DNA from: Chrysemys picta bellii | Taxonomy: Eukaryota | Assembly (NCBI RefSeq): GCF_011386835.1 | Contig: NC_088792.1 | Span: 57,722,001 to 57,786,000, forward strand | DNA: 64,000 bases | Reading direction: 5' to 3' | In this document: positions 6,621 through 26,764 of the stretch, one piece after another | Layout: each line of letters opens with the position of its first letter | How positions within the stretch are numbered: the first letter of the stretch is position 1 | Notes under the pieces: model-generated | Seen by the model: the letters and a program-made list of their open reading frames with translations, nothing else | Databases searched by the model: none | What the model was told of the DNA's origin: nothing | Translations under genes and position numbers: made by a program

Positions 6621-9585
6621 GCCAACACCCTTTTGCTCAGAGACGGATATAGGGGAGTATCCTGTTCTGTCAGTTTCCTAATTCCTGGGCCTCAGTTCAT
6701 TGACTTTTAAAAGTCCAAGTTCATTAGACCTTCCCTGTTCAAATTACAGCTGATAAGTCTAGAAAGGAAAATGTGTGAGAAGCAATAGAAGCTGCTGTCA
6801 CAATGAAGCAAGTCTGTAGCCGAGCTAGAAGAATGCCAATGATGTAGATGTGTCCTCTTCTACAGGCTTATAACAGATTATATTGTAGACACATCTACAT
6901 CATTGGTCTTCCTGAATGATAGTTCTGCTATACTGCTATTACAAACTCGATTCAATGTTTAAAAACAAAAACAAACAAACAAAAAACACAGCTTTTATTG
7001 CCCCTCTCTCTCTCTCTGTCTTTTTTCCTTCCTGGCCTTCTCAGCTGTAATCTAAACAGAGGAGACCAAACAAACCTGGACTTTCTAATGTCAATGAATT
7101 GTGGTCTAGGAATAAGGCACTTGAAGGAACAGGATCCTCCCCCTATATCACAAGAGAAGGAAATAAAAACCGTTGATAAATCGTCCGCAGCGAATACAAT
7201 GTAGCACAGCAGCCAAGAGAGGGGAGGAGACAGGAGGGAGCTTCCTCCCTCTTCTAACTATTCCATCCCTATCTTTTCAGGGCAGCATCAGAGGGGGAGG
7301 AGAAAGGAGGAGGAAGACACTGCTGGTCATGTCATGGACTACCATGTTATTTAGCTTAAAACACACATCTCTGAGAAATGACATAAATCTGAGATTTCAG
7401 CTTCTTGTTACAGCACCAAGTCTGGTACATGGAAAAGTAAATCTCAAGGGGGGAGAAGGGGCAGGTCAACTGTTAATTTAACGAGACTTTAAAACTGAAG
7501 AAAGAGGAACACATTGAACTCTACAAATACACAATGTGTTTGTTCTCTGAACACATAGCTCCACCCAATGGACTGGATCTGAAACCTCATTACCTTAAGG
7601 CTCCTGAAATCTTTTCTTTTATGCCATCATTTCAGGTCTCTAAATCCTCTCATTTTTTCTACTGCTATGCTCCCTCCTAGACCCTCTAAGTCACAGGTAT
7701 TTTGATCTACTTGTGTTAATATTTGTGGCATCTGATCTGATTCTTAGCCACTTTGTTTTCATGTCCAAGGAGGCTAAATTATCAGCAGTGGCCATGTTTG
7801 TGATACTGCCTACTTCTCCACCATTGACTGCTGTGCTGGTGATTTGTTTTGGGTTTATGCTGGGTTTTAATTTTCATATTCAAGCTCTTTAGGGCAGAGA
7901 GTATGCATTCTTATGTCTTACACCATTTAGCACATATGCAGGTGCTGCTGTAATATGAATAATTATAATAGCCCAAAATCTTGCTTCCCGTGTAAATTAG
8001 TCCCATTACATCTAGTTGATAAATTTTAATGGACATCTAGTCTCATGTCATCAATACACGATGGAATTAAAGATCAAATTCTGTCCTTGGCTGAAGTTAA
8101 TAAGCTTGCAAGGCTACAACGGAGGGTAGAATTGAATCTGATACTTAGGACTGAATAAATGAGAGAAGAAAGAAGGTGAAATCAGAAATGGGATCTTCCA
8201 GCTAGTAGGCCCAATAAAGCTAATCAGACATAGAACTAAAATGTTGAAAAATGCTTCATTTTGTGTTGATCAAACCAAAATGTGGTGTTTCAAAGTTTTT
8301 TTTTTAAAATGTTTTAAAAGCAAGGGACATCCCAAAGTGAACCGTCTTTCCGAAATAAGACATCAGAACCTTTTCTTTCAGAAATGCAGATACAAACTTC
8401 TTCAACGTGTCTGTTTTTTCCCCTTTTTCTGCAGAAAAAGTTCATTAAAATGGACTCAAAATCATGAATTGCTTTGGTCAACCTGAATCTGCATTTTTCT
8501 GCAAAAAAGTTTTCAGATTAAAAGTTTTGTCTAGCTCTAATAATGACTTATTTCAGTGAGGTGAAGTGAGTATTATTGATGAGAAAGGTAGGGTTGAGAG
8601 GGGGGTAGGGAGTTTGAAGGGTTACTCAGAAAGGGAGGAATGGCTTTATACCTAATGGGAGGCATCTATAACAAAAATAAACTGTTTCATAAAGTGCTTT
8701 TAAAATGCAACAGTAGGGGTTGCAAGGCACCCTAACCAGCAACACGAGTGATTATTGTTTTAATAAACATGGACGGGGAATAGGTGAGCTTGTTAAAGCT
8801 CAGGAAGCCCCTCTCCTGTGTCATGACCCTTGAAGAGGCCAGGTTCACTGGGATTCTTTGCATTCAGAGAGCATAGAGTCTCTGCACGGCTGCCATCACT
8901 ATTAGCACTAGCCTTTGTAAAACGGGTGGATCATGTCCTTGACCCACTCCCCCAAATTGGCCAACAGCACTGGCTGGGAACAGAGGGGAGCAGAGATTGC
9001 ATTGTTTCCAGTGGTGGTGCACTGCTAATGCTGCTTCCGGGGCTCCTGACCTCCTCCCCACTTCCAGCATGGGGCTGATACTATATTCCATAAACCAGTC
9101 TGAGGGTTGTGCCGCTGAAATCTGTACAAAAAATGTGTAACAGCAAATGTTAAGCACTTGGCTGCATTGCATGTTTGTGCTATTAGGAAAAACCTTGCTG
9201 TTACTGGTTCCATTATTAAATTATGATATAAAACATACAAGGTGTGGAATGTAGCTGAGTTAACAATGCAATTGGAGTCTTAATTGGTGCAATTCTTCTG
9301 AAATTGCCCAACCTTAATGTTGCATGAATTCCTTCTTGTATGCATTGGATTTGGGCCCCAAATGTTTGCTGGCAAAATGACAGATGTACTCTCAGTGCCC
9401 AGAGACTATGCATATTTTTAAGGTAAAATTATACAGATACCTGTCTCTAAACATTCCATGTATGCCCCAGTGGAATGTTTCTGCTCTGCTGCTGAGTGCA
9501 CCAGTTGCAGGTGGTTGATTTCAATGACATGTTTATGGTTGACTGACTGGAGCACTAAAGATGTAGGGGCGGTTTGTTTTTGATG

Positions 9586-12636: not shown

Positions 12637-12686
12637 TTACAGTTCAGTCTGAATAAGGCGTAATGCTTTCTTCATGTTCTCTATCA
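12637..12686 (-). CDS. AGR3: AGR3 last coding exon, (L)[15 protein letters not shown]
   Basis: 50 nt ending in TAA (12639-12637); ttcttcttccag acceptor. It is the tail of ORF-track ORF 12637..12876. Confidence 0.97.
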
Positions 12687-15600
12687 CTGGAAGAAGAATA
12701 AACCGCAAATTAAAAAAATATTTGAAGTACGTTTCTATCTGAAAATAAAATCTCAATTTATCAAAATGTTTCGCTTGTGAATTAATTGATGTATATTGGG
12801 GCACAAAATATATTGTAGATCTTTTATTGTGGGATTTTTGGCACTGTTTACTGAAACCGAGGGTGTAGAGTTTCATGGTTCATCACTACTAAGAACTTGA
12901 CAAGCTCCATTTCATCACTTTTCACTTCCCTTCATTTTTCATATTTTAAAATTGATCCTCAACAGTAAATCTTATAATCATGCTTGAAGAGCTAACATAC
13001 AAATCAATAGACTTCAGTACATCTAATATTCTATTTGGGGTAAGAAAAAAGCTATGCATTCTGATAGATGCTGTGACATGAAAGGGACAAGGTCAACTTG
13101 AAAAATTACTTTTCTGTCTGACAATGAGTAATCCTAGGTTGTACCTAAGTAACTCTAAATTTAAAAAGTTGGTAGAAAAATATTTTCTCAATTTTTTCCC
13201 TAGACTGTTTACTTTGTGCATTTGACAGTCCTTTTGTGGATAGTAATTTTCACTGTGCCAGTTAAACCCTGGTCCTGTAAACTTATGAACGCATGCGTAA
13301 ATTGACTCAATTGAGTAGTCCTACTAATTTCAGTGGGAGTATTTGTGTACTTAAATGCTTTGCTGGATCAGGACCAGAGTGTTCGACCCCTTGCAAGAAT
13401 TACCGTAGGTATTTTTGGGGTGCGGAGCAGGAAGGACAATGAAATGCTGTCTGATCCTCAAGCACAGGTCAATGGGTAGGGTATGTCTCACTGGTCACAG
13501 TGTGAAATGCAAAGCATTCACAGTGTGGATACTTACAGAATGGTATGTCTTGGGGTTCGTAAGTATAGAGTCGATTAGAATATCTTCCAGTGATATCAGC
13601 TCTTACTGTAAGAGAGGGGTCTGAAAAAGTGGACATATTATACAATTATCCCATTGCATTCTCAGTAACAGCATCTTCAATGTCTACTGGTTGTGAATAT
13701 GAGGCAGAGTCAACTTAAATATAGTTTTGGAAGATACTAATTTAGAACAAATGGAATAATTACATTCTTTTCCACCCAGAGTTCTTATTACACTGATGTA
13801 CTGAACGAGTGACAGATTTATTTTAAATATTATGTATTAATTGTTAAATAGGGATATATGTTATGTTCACCAGTATGTATATTCTATTGCATGTTTAAGG
13901 GAAAATATCACAAAAAGAGGCCAGTCCTCTTGAATATATATATTCAGTAGGGCTGTCAAGCAATTAAAAAAGTGATTGCGATTAATTGTGTGATTAAAAA
14001 AATTGTCATTAATCTCACAATTAATCGAGTGTTACTAATGGAATACCATTTATTTAAATAATTTTGGATGTTTTTTACATTTTTAAATATATTGATTTCA
14101 ATTACAACATAGAATACAAACAAGGTTGTTTACATTTGCAGGAGATAATGCTGCCAGCTTCTTGTTTACAATGTCACCTGAAAATGAGAACAGGTGTTTG
14201 CTTGGCACTATTGTAGCCGGCGTTGTAAGATATTTACATGCCAGATGTGCAAAAGATTCATATGTCCCTTCATGCTTCAGTCACCATTCCAGAGGACATT
14301 GGTTCATGCTGACGATGGGTTCTGCTCAATAACGATCCAAAGCAGCACAGACCGACACATGTTCATTTTCATCATCTGAGTCAGATGCCACTAGCAAAGG
14401 TTGATTTTCTTTTTTGGTGGTTTGCATTCTGTAGTTTCCACATTGGAGTGTTGCTCTTTTAAAACTTCTGAAAGCATGCTCCACACCTCGTTCCTCTCAG
14501 ATTTTGGAAGGCACTTCAGATTCTTAAACCTTGGGTCGAGTGCTGTACCTATCCTTAGAAATCTCACATTGATACCTTCCTTGCATTTTGTCAAAGCTGC
14601 AGTGAGTGTTCTTAAAATGAACACCACATGCTGGGTCATCATCCAAGACTGCTATAACATGAAATATATGGCAGAATGTGGGTAAAACAGAACAGGAGAC
14701 ATACAATTCTCCCCCAAGGAGTTCAGTCACAAATTTAATTAACACATTATTTTTGTAATGAACGTCATCATCATGGAAGCATATCCTCTGGAAAGGTGGC
14801 CAAAGCATTAAGGGGCATATGAATCAGATATGCTAAGCATATCTGGCACGTAAATACCTTGCAATGCTGGCTACAAAAGTGCCATGCAAAAGCCTGTTCT
14901 CACTTTCAGGTGACATTGTAAAAAAGAAGAGGGCAGCATTATGTCCCATAAATGTAAACAAACTCATTTATCTTAGTGATTGGCTGAACAAGAAGTAGGA
15001 CTGAGTGGACTTGTAGGCTCTAAAGTTTTACATTGTTTTGTTTTTGAGTGCACTTATGTAACAAAAAAATCTACATTTGTAAGTTCAACTTTCATGATAA
15101 AGAGATTGCACTATAGTACTTGTTTGAGGTGAATTGAAAAATACTATTTCTTTTACAGTCAATATTCATATTAAAAAATAATATAAAGTGAGCACTGTAC
15201 ACTTTTTGTATTATGTGTTGTAAATGAAATCAGTTTATTTGGAAATGTAGAAAAAAATCCAAAATATTTAATACATTTCAATTGGTATTCTATTGTTTAA
15301 CAGTTTGATTAAAACTGTGATTAATAACGATTATTTTTTTTTAGTTAATTGCGTGAGTTAACTGTGATTAATCAACAGACCTAATATTCAGTATGTAAAA
15401 CTATGCACATACATTGGGTAAGGCATTCTGGCTCTGAAAGCTCCACATAAATTATATGAATCATGTATTACTGTGATTCTCAGACTTTTACTTTCTGAGG
15501 GCCAACTTTTATTATCCTCTCTTTGGCTCACTTCCCTTCTCTGACTAAAATTCTCATAACTTGAATTATATGGTCCGATCACCACAGTATCTGAGCGCCT

Positions 15601-18069: not shown

Positions 18070-21000
18070 TTTTTTTTTCCATAGCTTGTGGATCCCTTCC
18101 CCTTCTGCACCATCTGCCAGTGCTGCATCTTTCATTTATTATCTCCTTTCCAGGATGTGGAACCATTGGCCCCTGCCATCTCCCTCACCCCAGGGGCCGA
18201 AAGATTCTACACTGAGTGGCAATGTTTTGAAAATTTCACACCATGTTCAAGCTCAACCCAGGAGTGGGAAGAGCCTATGGTAATGGAATTCTAAGATTGA
18301 AGGGGGGGCTCAAACCCAAGCTACTTTCACATACACTTCACCCCCAACTCTCACCTATCCCTTACTCCTCTAGTGTGCTGGACGAGATGAACCTTGCTTT
18401 TTCTGTGTGCGTGTGCGCATCTGTCTATCAGTGCTGTCGGCTGCTAGAGGAGATATTTAAATACTCCCTCATTCTTCTCTTCTCTAAACTGATAAGTCTT
18501 CAGATAGGTAAAAGGCTGTTATAAAGAGGAGGAGGATCAGTTTTTCTCCATGTCCACTGAAGGTAGGACAAGAAGTGATGGTCTTATTCTGCAGCAAGGG
18601 AGATTTAGATATTAAGGGAAATGTTCTAACTATAAGGGCAGTTAAGCTCTGGAATACGCTTCCAAGGAAGGTTGTGGAATCCCCATCATTGGAGGTTTTA
18701 AAGACAAACACCTGTCAGGGATGATCTAGGCATATGCCTCAGTGCAGGAAGATGGACTAGGTGATTTCTCACGATCCCTTCCAGCCCTACATTTCTATGG
18801 TTTTGTTTGATGCCTTGAAGGAGGCAAGGGTTTGGTATATACCATGCTAACTCAAAAATTAATAAATTAAAATGTTAAATATCCTGTATATCATGAGGGA
18901 GAAAATTCCTATAACACATACATACTATTGAAATGAGGTTTCATTTTTAAAGAAGATATATATTGTGCATACCTACAAACATGATTCGAGGTACATATTG
19001 TCCATCAGGTGACAAGTTCTTATCTGTGGTTTCATGCTGGCAGGAAAATTAAGAGCAAATTATTAAATATTCATTTGCACTTTGTGAAACTAGCGAATAG
19101 GAGCATATGAAGCCATGGTAGATAATACTAACGTGACAACGTATGCTGAAATGCATCAATTTAAAACGTGCAATATATATCTCCTTACCATGAGATTTAG
19201 CATGATGAAGTTATTTTGAGCCATTTCTTGTATTTCCTCATTTTCTGCAAAAACCTTCTTCAGTGCTAGAAAAGATGTGATGGTTTTAAAAGCTGTTCTC
19301 AATCACTTCTTCTAAAACCTATTTTTTCTTCTTCACTGGGGCAACATATGCATGAGACTTTGCTTTCTCCACATTTCTAATGAGACAGGTCACAGATCTA
19401 TCACCACATTTTGGTTTTGTCCTGTGTCGGGACAACCTTCAGCTATACAAATGGAAGCTTTCTCCTGTTATTTCTGAAGCCTTTCATTTCAATGGGTGTC
19501 AAGCAACAGCTTGACAAAAGTGTATTATTCTCCGTAAATTCTTCTTAGGTCAATTTCAGCAGTCATGCCCCAGTCTCCTTCTCTGGTTACCAGTTCAGGA
19601 GGAAAGAACAATATTAAATCTGTTCAATGAGTTAGGAGTAAATTCATGCATCTTAATTTAAACCGTCTAATACTGCATCAGGCTTTGCAGAACAGCTTTG
19701 TAAGGTATTTTTTCATGTTCTCTGTTGTAAAAGGCTTGTGGTGGGGTTTGTAAGCAGCCTGTTTTCATTATTTACTTTTTGGAGATACTTTCTATTGAAT
19801 ATGCAGCACATCTGAGAAAGTGATTCAGTGTTACAGATAACTATAGAAAGGGGCCATATAACAATCTAGAGATTGGCGGATATATGTTCTAAAAATCTTC
19901 AAATTATTAGTTTAACAGTCAGACAATTGAAATTACCTTGGCAGTATTGACAGTCCTCCAGATGATGAATGACCATCAGTGGTTTGTTACTTTAATAACA
20001 ACAAAAAATACATAATTAGATCATCTGATGAGTGTAAAATTAGAGTCACTTGGATAAACAGGCCTGGATATGCAACTGCGGTAGCATCTTATGTTACACC
20101 AAACTAATAACTAGACTGAGGCATTGGGAAGAATGGGGCATATTTCTGAGTGTCATGTAACTCGTTCATAAAAAGGAACGCAAGAAAATAGAGATGCAAG
20201 ATATATTCTAAACTGAGAGGTTCTCAGCTTGGAGACTGCAGAGGATCATCTTTTTATTATTGCTTAATATATAGTTCCAGGAAGGCTTACAAAGAGAAGC
20301 ATTCTCCAACCTAGCCCAGTCTTGTGGACACTTACTACTGAGTAGAGCTAGTCAAAATTTCCTTTCTCTGGTTTTCTACAAGTTTTTTTTTTCCCCATAA
20401 AAAAATCTATTTTTGATTAAACTGCCCTTCCCTTGAAAATTGGCTATGAAAAGTTTCATTGAAAAATTGGGGGGGGGGGGGGGGAGGGGGGGAGAGGGTG
20501 TTGAACAGCTGCGGAATTGGCTTAAATTTTTCCCGAAATGAAAAATGTTGATGAAATTTAGATATCTTTCAACATATTGGGGAAAAATATACTCTATCAT
20601 AAGCCGGTTCGTTTATAAGCCAACCCCCCCCAAGATGGATAAGTAAAAATGGAAAATTTTTATGACCCGTTCTTAAGCCAACCCAGGGGTCAGCAAACTT
20701 CGGCTCCCGGGCCATGAGGATAAGCCGCTGGCGGGCCGAGATGGTTTGTTTACCTCGAGCGTCCACAGGCACAAAGGTAAACCTTAGTAAACGAAGTGTC
20801 CCGGCATGCCAGATATTTACCCTGACGGCTGGGACAGCAATTGGTGGGGAAATTTTTTTTGGGGGGGAGAAGCTGGGGGTGAGGGGAGTAACCCATCCTA
20901 TCTCTTCCCACCTTATCTGGGAAGGATGTCTCTGGCCTGGCTGGAGCTGCTCCAGCGGGCCAGACCGGGCGGTGCGGCCGCAGCATGTTCCAGCGGGCTG

Positions 21001-24000
21001 GGACGGGCGGTGCGGCCGCAGCATGTTCCAGCGGGCTGGGACGGGCGGTGCGGCTGTAGTATGTTCCAGCGGTCTGGGACGGGCGGCGCGGCCGCAGCGT
21101 GCTCCGGCGCCCAAGCGGCGCAGCCACAGCCTGCGCTGGGGGGCGGGGCTGAGCGGCATGGCTGCAGCCTGCCAGCCCCGGAGCTGCAGCTGCTTCGGAG
21201 GCTGGGGGGAGAGCAGCGTGGCCAAAAGCAGAGAGACTCTGGCCCCGCCTCTTCCCTTCTGGCTGTGCTGCTTCTCCTTGCGCCCTCTGTTGGGGGGAGA
21301 GGCTGTGTCCCACCTCTCCCTCTCTATACCCATTCATAAGCTGACCCCCTTCTCTGGTGCTTCCCTTTTTTACTAAAAAAATTTGGCTTATGAACGAGTA
21401 TCTATGGTCAGGGCTGGCTTTAGACCGATTCCGCCGATTCCCCGGAATCGGGCCCCACGCCTAAGAGGGCCCCACTCCCCTGGCCGGAGCGCAGCAAGCC
21501 CTGCGGCTTCACTCCCCTGGCGGGAGCCGCGGCCCCGCTCCCCCGGCCGGAGTGCCGGCCCGGCAAGCCCCGAGGTGCCGCTCTCCGGTCAGAGCGCCGG
21601 CCAGAGCCCAGCAACCACGTGGCCCCGCAACCCCGGCCGGAGCACGGCAGTCCGAAGTGCTGCTGAAGACTCGGAGCGCCGCCCAGTGAGTACAAGCCCC
21701 TCTTGCTAAAGCCGGCCCTGTATACGGTAATTAAAATTTTTAAAAGACAAATTTTTATTCTTTTTTTGACCAGTTCTTGTGCTCAGCACAGTGCTTATTA
21801 CTATGTGTTTTGCCACTGTAGTCAATAGTGCTCAGTAGGATTTTCCTCCTTGCTTTCACAAGGTATGCAACAGATTAGTTGCCCTTCTTTTAAACCTGAG
21901 TTGGTAGGTTGGCCTGGGACTGTGCTTTGTTGCTGTAGAAAGAAGTGGGTTTGGAGGAGTGACCTGGAGGAGCGTGAGGTTATGAGGTGTACAGGAATCC
22001 TCAAGTGTACTTCCCACTGAATCCATAGTGATGCTTATTCAAGAACTCATTCTGGACGAGTTGTGAACAGTGAGGAACTGCCCATGTATTTAATACTATA
22101 AGCCAAAGGGGAAAGCATTGAGATGATAGTTAATACAACAGAATGTTGCCTGAGGTTCTATTACTGGCTCATGCTGTTGTGGTAAAGCTGAGGAATTAAT
22201 CAAATATAAATACCATCATGAAAACAAGTCTGTTTACTTTCTGATAATAGACCTTTATCCTGTGGCAATTTTCTATTCCATAGCACACACATAAACGCCA
22301 ACATCTTGTCTAACAGTGCTTGATGCAGTAAGCCACAGTGCGATTACCAAAAAGATGTTGCTTTTATTTATAGAATTACATTTTTGTTTTGTTACAAGAT
22401 GCTTTCTATATTAGCTAGAGTGGGATTTTTTGTTTTGCTTTGTTTCTTTACAGTACTTTGATTAGATAGTTCAGCTGACTTGACAACTTTATCTTTTCTA
22501 AATGTTCTTTACCTTTTTCTTGCTTGAAAAAGCCCTTCTTCATAGGTTTGCACCCAAGTAATATCATCTCCCCAGCCTGTAATCACAATGGAGGGATTAA
22601 TCAACAGAGTCTTGAAAATAACTTCTGTTTTGGGCATTTATCAATATCTTGCACAGAGATAGGATTTTTTTTTTATCCAGTGCCTTCAAAACTCCATGTA
22701 GATATTAAGTCTCTCAACTTTTGAGTATTACACTAATTTAACAGATAAGTAAACTTAGGCACAAAGGACCAGGGAACAGGTTTACAAAGGTATTCAAGTT
22801 TCTGAAGAGGCAGATAGGCACCAAGTTGGAATTTCAAAAACACCTAGGCAAGTTACTTGCCAAACTTAAGCACTTAGGCAAGCACCTAGTGGAATTTACA
22901 ATCTTCATTAGTCCTCAGGTCCCTGAGTCTGGCTGACCTGCATTTGATGCAGAGCCTGAAGTCAGGGGACAAAAGTAGGATGAAAAAAGAGTTCCCAACA
23001 CTCATAGTTGTGGAGAAAAGTTTGAAAATGTGACCCGTAAAATTTCAAATACCAGCAGACAAAAGGATTCCAAAATCAATATTTAAAAAAAAACAACCTC
23101 ATATTTTTTAATCTAATCTCATAATTTTGGGGCCTGAATCATGATTTTTTTTTAACATTAGGAGTTGGCAACACTAAGTCTGTTCATGCAGTCTTTATCA
23201 AGAATTAATATTAAAAATATTTCCAGATGAATTACCAGCCTCTCTACTCATCCCCACCTAGTCATTTTCTGGTCTTGAGGAGGGTATTGTCCAATTGATT
23301 CATGTGCCTTATCAGATCCCCAATGTGCAAGTTCTTGTTTAATAGGTTCAGACTCCTCAACAATGTTACTTCCCTATTAAGGCTGTGGTGGGAGTACTAT
23401 TGCTGCAAGAGTTGAACACCAATTGATTTGGATTTGGAACCAGCTGAAGATCCTGCCTGATTCTTCTCTGCTGAGTATCTTGGTCAATCTCAACCATGTA
23501 GGAGCTTGTAGTAAAGCTCCACCTTGTGACAACAGCCAATATTGTTCAATCTCTTTCCTTATCCAGTCTTGTCAGTATTTGATCTTCGATAAGATTTGGG
23601 CTGCATTCTAATGGGTTAAAGAGGAAGGCCTGAGATGTTTTAAATCTGGTATCTCTTGGCCTCCTATCATTTAAGGAGGACCATTTAGGTTAATGATGTA
23701 TCTCTCAGGTTGGTAATATTATTCTGATCTGTTTCACCAATAAGCAGCTGAGCTTGGCTTGAGTCAGTGACTGAGGTAGGGGGTTGTTTTATAGCTCAGA
23801 AGAGCTAATATAAGGTCTCTTTATTGTAGTAGAGATTTCTTAGCAATCTGGACTGCTGGAAAGAGCAATATACTCCCTTATTAGTTCTGGGGGCTGCAAG
23901 TTACATACTTAAACTTATACTGTGTCTCAGAAGCCTGGAATTTAGAGCAAGCAAGCTGTCACATGCTGTCAGTGACTATTTCTTCCACATTTCCAAAATA

Positions 24001-26764
24001 AGGAATGATGCCTTATGCTGCAAAATTCAAATGATTCTAGCTTCCATTTTCAATCCTGTCCTATGTGGAGTGACATATTAGGGCTTGGTCCTGGCATTTT
24101 TTTAAAGCATTGCTGGTCAAGGACTGTAGGACTTCAGTATGATTGCAATAGGTTATCAGACTTTCAGCTACAGAGAGTTCCCCTCTCTTTGCATGGAAGG
24201 ATGTGTGAGCCCTCAGGGGTACTTGGGATTAGATGGGAGTTATATGGTGCATGTGCCTTGTGCTAATTCTCTTTGTGTGGGATGAATTTTGCCAAGTGTG
24301 AGTTATGGGTACTTGAGGACTATAGAATTCTTAAATATTACATGATAGGCAGGGCCAGCTCTAAGCACCAGCAAAACAAGCTGGTGCTTGGGGTGGCATT
24401 CTGGCATGGGCCATGCCGCCCCTTCAAGCAAGAAAAAGGTAAAAATGTGCCCCGGCCGCCCTAACTCACCTCCGCTGCTGCCGCTGCTCGCCCTCCCTCC
24501 CAGGCTCTCAAACCCGGGAGGGAAGGGGAGATCCCGCGCGGCCGCGGCGCGCGAAACAGCTGATTCGCACGCTGCGGCCACTCGGGATCTCCCCCTCCCT
24601 CCCAGGTTTGAGAGCCTGGGAGGGAGGGGGAGCAGCGGCGCGCGAATCAGCTGTTTCGCACGCCGCGGCCACTCGGGATCTCCCCCTCCCTCGCGCGTTT
24701 GAGAGCTTGGGAGGGAGGGGAGACCCTGAGTGGCCGTGGCGCACGCGCTGCTTCTCCCTCTCCCTCCCTCCCTCCTAGGCTTGAGAGCCTGGGGGGAGGA
24801 GGCAGGGCTGGGGATATGGGGAAGGGGCAGAGTTGAGGCAGGGCCGGGGGTGGGGTAAGAAAAAAACAGGGGTGGGGGGCAGCCAAAATTGTTTTTGCTT
24901 GGGGTGGCAAAAATCCTAGAGCCGGCCCTGATGATAGGGAGAGGCAGGGGAGGTAGCTGGAGATTATGCAAAGCAAGTAATCTTATCCAAATTCCACAAA
25001 TGGAGATGGAGAAGTGGCAAGGACCTTGCAGAGCTCCTAAACTATTCCTGTACCCATATTCTTAAGGGAATTAATTAACAGAGAGAAAATCATTACATTT
25101 AAAGTTAAAGACTAGTTAACATTAAAGTTGAAAATTTTGCATAACAAGGAACTTCTTAAGTGTGAAAATGAACAGCTAAAGGACAGGAGATAGATATGTG
25201 AGTATCCTCATTGGTCAGTCTCTAAATGTGCTTCTGTTCTGGAAAACAATTAAGCAAAAATAGTGTGTGTGGGGGGGGGAGGAAGTCTGTGATTTCCATG
25301 TTAAATGTGTCAAGTTGGGTTATTTGTTTCTAGTACGTCATTATTAGTAACAAGTTCTGCAGGCCAAATGAGGCTGTGATGTGCCACACAAAGCAGTGCA
25401 GGTTGAGTGAATTAACCTGATAGGCTGCAACTGAAGGAGAGACAGAGCTTGAAAGGCTGATTGAAGGTTGAACCCAGCTGAGAAGGAACAGACAGGGCTG
25501 GAATAAAGCCAGGAAGTTAGCAGCAGAAAGCTGCTGCAGGGGAAGTGGTCTGCAGTCACTCCCTGGGAGAAGGGGATTTGGATTGATAAACCTAGAGAGT
25601 GGGGAGGCTAGAGGGTGAGAGCAAAGACATAGGAAGGAGGCCAGGGAAACAGCAGCAGGGTCTGGGTGCAAGCAGCAGGGCCGGCTCCAGGGTTTTTGCT
25701 GCCCCAAGCGGCAAAAAAAATAAAAATAAAAAAATAAAAAAAAGCTGCGATCATGATCGACGGCAGCTCCACCGCGCTGCTTTCTTCTTTGGCGGCAATT
25801 CGGCGGCAGGTCCTTCCCTCTGAGAAGGACCGAGGGACCTGCCGCTGAATTGCCACCAAAGAGCCTGATGTGCCGCCTCTTCCCCTTGGCCACCCCAAGC
25901 ACCTGCTTGCTGAGTTGGTGCCTGGAGCCGGCCCTGGCAAGCAGACCATAGGTACTGGACATACAATGCCTGACCTGGCAACTGGAGTGTAATAGGTGGG
26001 CCCAGGTTCCCCTACCAGCCACTGGGATAGTAGCATAAACTGAGCAGTGGAGCCAAAGACTGCCTGGGACAGATGCCCAAAGGGACTCTGATACCCTGGA
26101 ATGGGAGGGCTGTACAGTGACCTGGCTGGAGGACTAAGTCACGAAGAAGGAATACCCTGAGTTCCAGCGAGAGATCACGGGGTGAGGAAAGGTATGCCAG
26201 ACCAGAGTGGAGCTAATTCCCAGAGCAGCGAGGAGGAGGCACCCTAGTGGTGAGTGGACTCCGTGAGAGAGGCCCTCAGTGCTATCTGTACAACTCCAGT
26301 GCTTCATTGGGTTTGCTCAGGCATAACTTATTGGAACTGTGTAAATTATTTCATTGCACAAGATGAAACAGAGCCCTACTCCCTGTTAGCTCTGCTGGTT
26401 TTGCAGAGCTAAAAGGAAAAAAAAATCAGTAAACGTGAGGGGTGGGAATGTAAAGTTAAGAGTGAATGCACACAAGGGGTAGATCTGTTGAATAACAAAA
26501 AGTGCTCTTTTCATATAGCCCTTTTCAGAGAAAATAAGCACACTTAAAATAAACATCATATGCTATCAAATGTCTTAAAATAGAAGAGTATATTGAATTT
26601 AAACATGTGGCTGCATTTTATATTAACTAAACAATTAAATAAAGTGAACATACTGCACCTCTCGACAGCGTCTGGGGAGCTCTTTTTTCCTTTTTGATTG
26701 CCATCGCGAGGTTGGAAGAAACTGCGATTAGCAGGAGTGACAAAGCCAATGCTGAATGCATCAT
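12637..26764 (-). CDS. AGR3: Anterior gradient protein 3 (ER-resident PDI/thioredoxin-fold protein), complete spliced CDS of 7 coding exons, 165 aa
   Basis: Join(26764-26659, 22576-22513, 19989-19937, 19265-19189, 19036-18973, 13620-13537, 12686-12637) = 106+64+53+77+64+84+50 = 498 nt, open, all introns GT-AG, phases compatible. Translation: [165 protein letters not shown]. Closely matches human AGR3 as I recall it. Confidence 0.98.
13537..13620 (-). CDS. AGR3: AGR3 coding exon, (D)[27 protein letters not shown](L)
   Basis: 84 nt; ccactttttcag acceptor, T|GTAAGT donor. Confidence 0.97.
13948..15383 (-). mobile_element. hAT non-autonomous element with transposase remnant and long inverted arms, in AGR3 intron 6
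   Basis: TIR TAGGGCTGT / ACAGACCTA; exact 8-bp TSD ATATTCAG. The minus strand encodes ALDPRFK...CPLEW*LKHE...[27 protein letters not shown] (hAT dimerisation domain). The plus strand repeats the same C-terminus at about 14830-15000. Confidence 0.92.
15585..15790 (-). mobile_element. MIR-like CORE-SINE (similar copies at about 34760-34900 -, 35945-36070 -, 46585-46730 +)
   Basis: Reverse core CTCATTTTACAATAGGGGAACTAAGCC...ATGATTTGCCCAAGTCAC. Confidence 0.7.
16088..17468 (+). mobile_element. Solo LTR in AGR3 intron 6 (with nested Penelope-like insert)
   Basis: TGTGATG...CATCACA termini; exact 5-bp TSD CCTTC. Confidence 0.88.
16807..17019. mobile_element. Penelope-like element end forming a near-perfect palindrome
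   Basis: GTAGCCGTGTTAGTC...GGTGGCACCTTAAAGACTAAC motif followed by its reverse complement; 14-bp flanking direct repeat TCACTTTGTTCTGT (16793-16806, 17020-17033). Confidence 0.85.
18041..18080 (+). repeat. (CT)n plus poly-T simple repeat
   Basis: Direct reading of the sequence. Confidence 0.9.
18512..18803 (+). mobile_element. CR1 LINE 3' end in AGR3 intron 6
   Basis: GGTTGTGGAATCCCCATCATTGGAGGTTTT...CCCTTCCAGCCCTACATTTCTATG. Confidence 0.85.
18973..19036 (-). CDS. AGR3: AGR3 coding exon, [21 protein letters not shown](D)
   Basis: 64 nt; ttttcctgccag acceptor, G|GTATGC donor. Confidence 0.97.
19189..19265 (-). CDS. AGR3: AGR3 coding exon, (A)[25 protein letters not shown]
   Basis: 77 nt; catcttttctag acceptor, ATG|GTAAGG donor. 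Confidence 0.97.
19937..19989 (-). CDS. AGR3: AGR3 active-site exon, (S)[17 protein letters not shown](A)
   Basis: 53 nt; AG at 19990-19991, GTAATT donor; TGT CAA TAC TGC at 19952-19941. Confidence 0.97.
20950..21108 (+). repeat. 38-bp CpG-rich minisatellite, about 4.2 copies
   Basis: Unit TTCCAGCGGGCTGGGACGGGCGGTGCGGCCGCAGCATG starting at 20950, 20988, 21026 and 21064. Confidence 0.95.
21409..21720. mobile_element. hAT MITE inserted inside the right TIR of the mariner-like element
   Basis: TIR CAGGGCTGGCTTTAG / CTAAAGCCGGCCCTG; 8-bp TSD TCTATGGT / TATACGGT (6/8, one difference a CpG transition). Confidence 0.85.
22513..22576 (-). CDS. AGR3: AGR3 coding exon, (G)[20 protein letters not shown](S)
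   Basis: 64 nt; AG at 22577-22578 and GTAAAG donor read on the minus strand. Confidence 0.97.
24350..24930. mobile_element. GC-rich hAT MITE in AGR3 intron 2
   Basis: TIR CAGGGCCAGCTCTA / TAGAGCCGGCCCTG; exact 8-bp TSD ATGATAGG; internal hairpin repeats. Confidence 0.93.
25375..26268 (+). mobile_element. Solo LTR in AGR3 intron 2 (contains a nested hAT MITE)
   Basis: Starts TGTGAT and ends CCGTGAGA (terminal CA decayed; compare CCGTGACA of the 5432 LTR); exact 5-bp TSD GAGGC. Confidence 0.75.
25676..25936. mobile_element. hAT MITE nested in the solo LTR
   Basis: Perfect 16-bp TIR CAGGGCCGGCTCCAGG; exact 8-bp TSD GCAAGCAG. Confidence 0.95.
26659..26764 (-). CDS. AGR3: AGR3 first coding exon (signal peptide to PQTLSR); the whole exon is 26659-26803 including 39 nt of 5'UTR
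   Basis: ATG ATG CAT TCA GCA TTG...CAG ACG CTG TCG AGA G|gtgcag; acceptor ttgctttgttttccag ending at 26804; A at -3 of the first ATG. Confidence 0.96.

Follow-up and report, generated by a model that had tools for sequence, protein, structure and literature searches.

A complete CQYC active-site motif in AGR3 of Chrysemys picta bellii and the spread of cysteine and serine at its second position among vertebrates

Introduction

[quoted passage not shown] What, then, does a complete CXXC motif in the AGR3 gene of a turtle mean, and is it peculiar to that turtle? The gene in question lies on the minus strand of a 64,000-nucleotide stretch of Chrysemys picta bellii DNA (NCBI RefSeq assembly GCF_011386835.1, contig NC_088792.1, positions 57,722,001 to 57,786,000), hereafter the window, whose positions are counted from its first letter. 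The plus-strand letters at window 19941-19952 are gcagtattgaca, and their reverse complement, TGT CAA TAC TGC, encodes C70-Q71-Y72-C73, with C70 at 19950-19952 and C73 at 19941-19943. The initial annotation had read these codons as part of an intact AGR3, and our gene model agrees, placing them in exon 3 of seven in a gene for a protein of 165 residues; its numbering of the two cysteines is also correct when counted from the first of two ATGs.

The general difference in mechanism between CXXC and CXXS sites is summarised in PMC12384036. For AGR3 itself, the signature was described as Cys-Gln-Tyr-Cys/Ser in a study that attributed two cysteines to the majority of AGR3 orthologues and limited AGR3 to Sarcopterygii (Grassme et al., 2016; PMC4839744). 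Because that study describes the two-cysteine majority and the turtle protein is in RefSeq, the CQYC sequence state is already known, and nothing about it is new or peculiar to this genome. No paper was found in the searchable literature in which "AGR3" and "CQYC" occur together.

Orthology of the window gene

The query for a search of the representative library was the stop-free sequence surrounding exon 6 of the window gene; full-length proteins containing HHLEDCQYC were among the matches, and one full-length match, the AGR3 of an opossum (P0031), was then used as the query and gave the named AGR family. The window protein is identical at 164 of 164 positions to anterior gradient protein 3 of Trachemys scripta elegans (XP_034615264.1; P0222), a sequence also held under three more accessions, one of which is numbered beside the AGR2 of Emydura macquarii. 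The exact window protein is encoded by three turtle assemblies with the same exon structure. It shares 94-96% identity with bird AGR3, 88-91% with mammalian AGR3 and about 62-66% with AGR2, and carries both the AGR3 signature (residues 70-73, CQYC) and the AGR3 tail (residues 162-165, QTEL). Judged by these comparisons, the window gene is an ordinary turtle orthologue of AGR3 (PDIA18) that is already in RefSeq.

At the DNA level, the AGR3 locus of the window is 97-98% identical to those of two emydid turtles (L001 and L002; GCA_027887155.1 and Trachemys GCA_013100865.1) and about 79-86% identical to that of the pleurodire Emydura (L003); the window thus represents a third turtle, close to the two emydids. 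The codon of the second active-site cysteine is TGC in the window (19941-19943) and in the two emydid loci, and the synonymous TGT in Emydura (L003, approximately 7367-7385). The open reading frame (ORF) of the window gene opens with two adjacent in-frame ATGs (26759-26764). The turtle RefSeq models, of 164 residues, begin at the second, so that C70 and C73 of this text are C69 and C72 in RefSeq numbering. Bird and mammal AGR3 models have two residues ahead of the conserved His.

Distribution of cysteine and serine among vertebrates

The active-site tetrapeptide was tabulated over all fetched proteins, none of which is a TXNDC12, and an AGR3-like set was defined as proteins at least 70% identical to the window protein and 155-175 residues long (n = 199). 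The set is primate-heavy, and no AGR3 of carnivores, pangolins or monotremes is among the cluster members listed. A mapping of Cys and Ser over AGR3 orthologues had been suggested in the initial annotation; it places Cys in the majority, with Cys at the fourth motif position in 155 of the 199 proteins and Ser in 44; of the latter, a chimeric Myotis model and the Ag1 of Coregonus do not count as genuine AGR3.

A CxxC motif is present in all sampled birds and in a crocodile, lizards, geckos and snakes, in nearly all frogs, in salamanders and in one caecilian (Geotrypetes, CEYC), as well as in lungfish (CKYC), coelacanth (CKFC), sharks and rays (CKYC, CQYC, CRYC and similar) and a chimaera (CPHC), the "AGR3-like" labels of the shark and lamprey proteins being the names given by NCBI. 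CxxC is likewise found in all sampled marsupials, in xenarthrans, in Mus musculus (Q8R3W7, P0300), rat, hamster and gerbil, in rabbit, pika, treeshrew and colugos, and in ruminants (including cow), pig, peccary, whales, bats and moles. Among primates it occurs in the strepsirrhines Otolemur, Microcebus and Prolemur and in the colobines Semnopithecus, Trachypithecus, Rhinopithecus and Pygathrix. With CQYC or CPYC extending from marsupials, xenarthrans, rodents and lagomorphs through ruminants, whales, bats, treeshrew and colugos to strepsirrhines and colobines, CXXS is not "the mammalian" state that it had been taken for.

Ser is only found in hominoids, cercopithecines and platyrrhines, in Equus and rhinoceroses, in Hippopotamus, in all sampled Afrotheria (elephant, dugong, manatee, two sengis and golden mole), in Marmota and Callospermophilus, in the caecilians Microcaecilia and Rhinatrema, and in the frog Mixophyes together with a partial Pelodytes model. 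The related suggestion that mammals as a group lost the second cysteine fails as well, since Ser among mammals is confined to non-colobine anthropoids, Perissodactyla, Hippopotamus, Afrotheria and marmotine squirrels. The accompanying caveat, that birds may also carry CQYC and that the state could be a sauropsid or ancestral trait, fared better in part: birds do have CxxC and the ancestral alternative agrees with the data, but a limit to sauropsids does not, since lungfish, coelacanth and cartilaginous fishes share the motif.

On a quick maximum-likelihood tree of the AGR3-like set, built without the trait column, the Cys/Ser state changes 11 times (9 times with the trait column included), versus at least 35 times for shuffled labels, and on the accepted species phylogeny about 8-9 changes are counted, including either a reversal in colobines or three losses in anthropoids. 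Because Cys is widespread, Ser is found in scattered derived lineages and the changes are few on both tree and phylogeny, CxxC is the ancestral state of AGR3, strongly conserved and probably shared by jawed vertebrates at large, and human AGR3 with its CQYS is derived.

Some of the switches are visible between close relatives. In squirrels, CQYS of Marmota and Callospermophilus (P0347, P0350, P0356) stands beside CQYC of Ictidomys and Sciurus (P0198, P0004), and the CQYS of the marmot group looks like a recent and independent switch. In anthropoids, the four colobine genera have CQYC (P0239, P0243, P0273, P0127) and hominoids, cercopithecines and platyrrhines have CQYS (P0233, P0247, P0137), which implies either a reversal from Ser to Cys in colobines or three parallel losses of Cys. 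Outside AGR3, the motif of AGR2 is CPHC in Emydura macquarii (P0201) and CPHS in an AGR2-like model of Chelonia mydas (P0325), and some teleost Ag1 proteins (Megalops, Hoplias) also have CPHC; the second cysteine thus comes and goes among other AGR paralogues as well.

Predicted fold and active-site geometry

Pfam assigns the AGR3 protein to the Thioredoxin_7 family (PF13899, E = 4e-28), and a sequence search of the PDB returns 3PH9 as the best match (E = 1.6e-87), followed by entries for AGR2 near 1e-67 and for ERp18/TXNDC12 (1SEN, 2K8V) at 1e-24, with 1SEN in seventh place. In the PDB alignment of the stop-free stretch around exon 3, the exon is matched residue for residue by 3PH9, the human AGR3, which has CQYS, and human AGR2 has CPHS; the initial annotation had named both human motifs correctly.

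An AlphaFold2 model of the Trachemys protein (P0222), computed from a 46-sequence alignment, has a mean predicted local distance difference test (pLDDT) score of 81 and scores of 89-98 over the active-site region. In RefSeq numbering, a strand occupies residues 60-65 and a helix begins after it at residue 70, and the N-terminal helix at residues 2-21 has low pLDDT. The modelled active site is arranged in the canonical thioredoxin manner, with the first cysteine (69) at the helix cap and the second (72) in the first turn. Foldseek ranks human AGR3 first (3PH9, 92% identity, TMt 0.88), then AGR2 and ERp18, including oxidised 2K8V, and then DsbD-gamma, DsbH and thioredoxins. Across the 46 AGR-family sequences of the alignment, the first cysteine is invariant, the fourth motif position is C or S, and a Y-V-P-R segment is nearly invariant. 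From what is known of thioredoxin folds, P116 of the Y-V-P-R loop (codon at 18989-18991) is a candidate cis-proline facing the active site.

Proposed function of the CQYC site

Taken together, the sequence, the structural model and the analogy with related proteins suggest that CQYC forms of AGR3 have a functional dithiol site, a reading to which we assign a probability of about 0.6. Following the established mechanism of thioredoxins and PDIs, we propose that C70 would cap the N-terminal end of the active-site helix as the exposed nucleophile, forming mixed disulfides with clients, and that C73, in the first helical turn, would be the resolving cysteine, releasing the client through an intramolecular C70-C73 disulfide. 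A CQYC AGR3 may thus serve as a reductase, an oxidase or an isomerase that cycles between dithiol and disulfide, as the CGAC protein ERp18 does, and CXXS forms such as human AGR3 and AGR2 would isomerise clients or hold them longer, being unable to resolve themselves. Cys has persisted in most lineages over long spans of time, and turtles differ at its codon only synonymously (TGC/TGT); both facts argue for constraint on the second cysteine. More tentatively, and at somewhat less than even odds, we propose that AGR3 was ancestrally a true CXXC dithiol oxidoreductase and was repeatedly converted to a one-cysteine, CXXS, "holdase-like" form in anthropoids, perissodactyls, the hippopotamus, Afrotheria, marmots, caecilians and one frog, colobines apparently having reverted from Ser to Cys.

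Several points weigh against a functional dithiol site. Ser has taken the place of the second cysteine on about 8-9 occasions while the gene itself was kept, with an apparent regain in colobines, which suggests that the resolving cysteine is not essential to the core function, and only the first cysteine is invariant across the AGR family. In the 46-sequence alignment, the residue ahead of the first cysteine is Asp or Glu. Active thioredoxins usually have an aromatic residue there, and the acidic residue may disfavour a reactive thiolate. Finally, a search of the searchable literature, which did not cover the paper on the Agr3-deficient mouse, yielded no biochemical assay of a CQYC AGR3.

The first two of these points are equally what would be expected if the second cysteine were nearly neutral. 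AGR3 would then be a non-catalytic binding partner or chaperone, or would act through its first cysteine only; Cys and Ser would be interchangeable at position 73, and CQYC would persist by weak constraint and the one-step path between TGC and TCC, not by dithiol catalysis. Consistent with such a role, the roughly 8-9 independent changes occurred in a protein that is otherwise about 85-92% identical, colobines have Cys within an otherwise Ser clade of anthropoids, and AGR2 works with a CXXS site, as do most Ag1 proteins. What near-neutrality does not readily explain is that the great majority of lineages, sharks, birds and most mammals among them, have kept Cys through more than 400 million years, that the synonymous TGC and TGT codons of the two turtle suborders preserve it, and that 9-11 state changes, compared with at least 35 for shuffled labels, make the trait strongly clade-bound instead of freely drifting. 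We regard near-neutrality as the less likely reading, about half as probable as the functional dithiol site.

That CQYC arose in turtles or sauropsids from a CXXS ancestor, as an innovation that made a new oxidoreductase, has nothing in its favour beyond the human-centred literature in which AGR3 is CQYS. It is ruled out by the sampled taxa, since CxxC is shared by cartilaginous fishes, coelacanth, lungfish and amphibians, by every sauropsid sampled, and by marsupials and most placentals; CxxC is also the published majority state.

Support from independent DNA and transcript-like sequences

Window positions 18800-20200 are present in runs from 12 studies, and four of these runs were compared: X8, an independent DNA sample with the same organism label from a different study; X4, which carries a second organism label; and X15 and X17, which we guess to be RNA. 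Contigs of X8 and X4 span 19941-19952 with zero differing letters. The spliced contigs of X15 and X17 have the joints 19036>19189 and 19265>19937, which fall exactly where the gene model places the borders of exons 5, 4 and 3; the joint ends are CT..AC, that is, GT..AG on the minus strand, exon 3 has 0 other letters, and the loose ends past 19993 run on into the sequence of exon 2. The shares of sampled words in X15 and X17 are small, as expected for exon-only content. The window AGR3 is intact and appears to be transcribed.

The initial annotation had proposed that reads or cDNA be checked for a TCC or TCT codon; there is none, all four data sets having TGC. An assembly or sequencing error with a true Ser codon, for which no support was found, is accordingly ruled out by the identical bases in X8, X4, X15 and X17, by three other turtle assemblies and by the identical RefSeq protein.

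The same contigs differ from the window at a few other places. The X8, X4 and X15 contigs share a 3-nucleotide insertion (TGT) after 19275, which lies in the intron immediately upstream of exon 4. X8 has four single-base differences, among them 19308 and 19333 in the intron upstream of exon 4 and 19053 in the next intron, the last of which is common to X8 and X4. The insertion and the single-base differences of X8 all lie outside the exons and reflect ordinary polymorphism or small assembly discrepancies.

Gene structure and other features of the window

Seven coding exons, all on the minus strand, were derived from six-frame motif scans and inspection of their boundaries. Exon 1 (26659..26764) contains the two adjacent ATGs and a hydrophobic, signal-like N-terminal segment, reaches the first base of the G36 codon and ends at a GT donor; from what is known of the AGR family, the hydrophobic segment is a putative signal peptide. 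Exon 2 (22513..22576) has AG/GT borders, and exon 3 (19937..19989), which is 53 nucleotides long with AG/GT flanks, holds the active site of the thioredoxin fold. Exon 4 (19189..19265) lies between the joints 19036>19189 and 19265>19937, exon 5 (18973..19036) encodes the Y-V-P-R loop, and exon 6 (13537..13620) supplied the query by which the AGR family was recovered. Exon 7 (12637..12686) encodes Q-T-E-L (12640-12651, residues 162-165), a predicted KDEL-like tail for endoplasmic reticulum (ER) retention, and ends with the stop codon TAA (12637-12639). All internal exon borders are AG/GT, and the joined coding sequence of 498 nucleotides is in frame and encodes 165 residues and a stop. The only cysteines of the encoded protein are residues 70 and 73.

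A tblastn search of the window with the spliced AGR3 protein matched each exon once and found no second AGR paralogue or AGR2-like exons within the 64 kb. AGR3 is described beside AGR2 in a Snx13/Ahr/Tspan13 block (PMC3573343). The consecutive RefSeq accession numbers of the AGR3 and AGR2 of Emydura hint at such adjacency. An Rfam scan of the whole window gave no match, and Pfam recognised no family in the eight long ORFs examined in other parts of the window. The introns of AGR3 contain GC-rich minisatellites at 20948-21137 and 24480-24720, with a 38-nucleotide unit in about 4 copies and a 91-nucleotide unit in 2 copies with inverted arms of 80-88 nucleotides. They lie in local peaks of GC content (0.52 versus about 0.40) and give rise to long spurious ORFs on both strands.

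Significance

For this genome the finding is of little consequence: the gene is a standard annotated AGR3 with the common vertebrate CQYC motif, in print since 2016. What it does bring out is that the CXXS label given to AGR3 in reviews is human-centred, the protein being CXXC in mouse, rat, cow and most other vertebrates, and that AGR3 biochemistry or inhibitor results carried from human to mouse, or the reverse, concern active sites that differ. If AGR3 was indeed an ancestral oxidoreductase that was repeatedly converted, human and mouse AGR3 would differ in catalytic mechanism, which would bear on the phenotypes of mouse Agr3 and on drugs directed against the human CXXS site. The scattered switches between Cys and Ser, such as that between colobines and other monkeys and apes, provide a natural experiment on the resolving cysteine.

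Comparison with known systems

The closest counterpart of the window protein is the AGR3 of Trachemys scripta elegans (XP_034615264.1), which has the same CQYC and QTEL and is annotated from the second ATG. Mouse AGR3 (Q8R3W7; P0300) is a protein of 165 residues, 91.5% identical to that of the window, and has CQYC as in the turtle; its tail is QSEL instead of QTEL, and it has one extra Cys in the region of the signal peptide. Human AGR3 (3PH9; Q8TD06; P0233) has the same fold and is about 88% identical overall, rising to 92% within the portion that aligns with 3PH9, but its active site is CQYS where that of the turtle is CQYC. AGR2 (2LNS, 9I3F) also shares the fold and is 72-74% identical over the solved domain; it typically has CPHS and a KTEL tail, versus the CQYC and QTEL of the window AGR3.

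Beyond the AGR proteins, TXNDC12/ERp18 (1SEN, 2K8V) is a single-domain ER paralogue with the thioredoxin fold, approximately 40% identical to AGR3 and recovered by Foldseek, its oxidised form included, with a probability of 1.00. The redox activity of ERp18 is documented; for AGR3 no such record was found in the searchable literature. Its site is given as CGAC with a KTEL tail in one source (PMC12384036), and human TXNDC12 is tabulated with a CGHC site and an EDEL tail in another (PMC8394676). TXNDC12 and the AGR3 of the window both possess a complete CXXC motif and differ in the dipeptide between the two cysteines.

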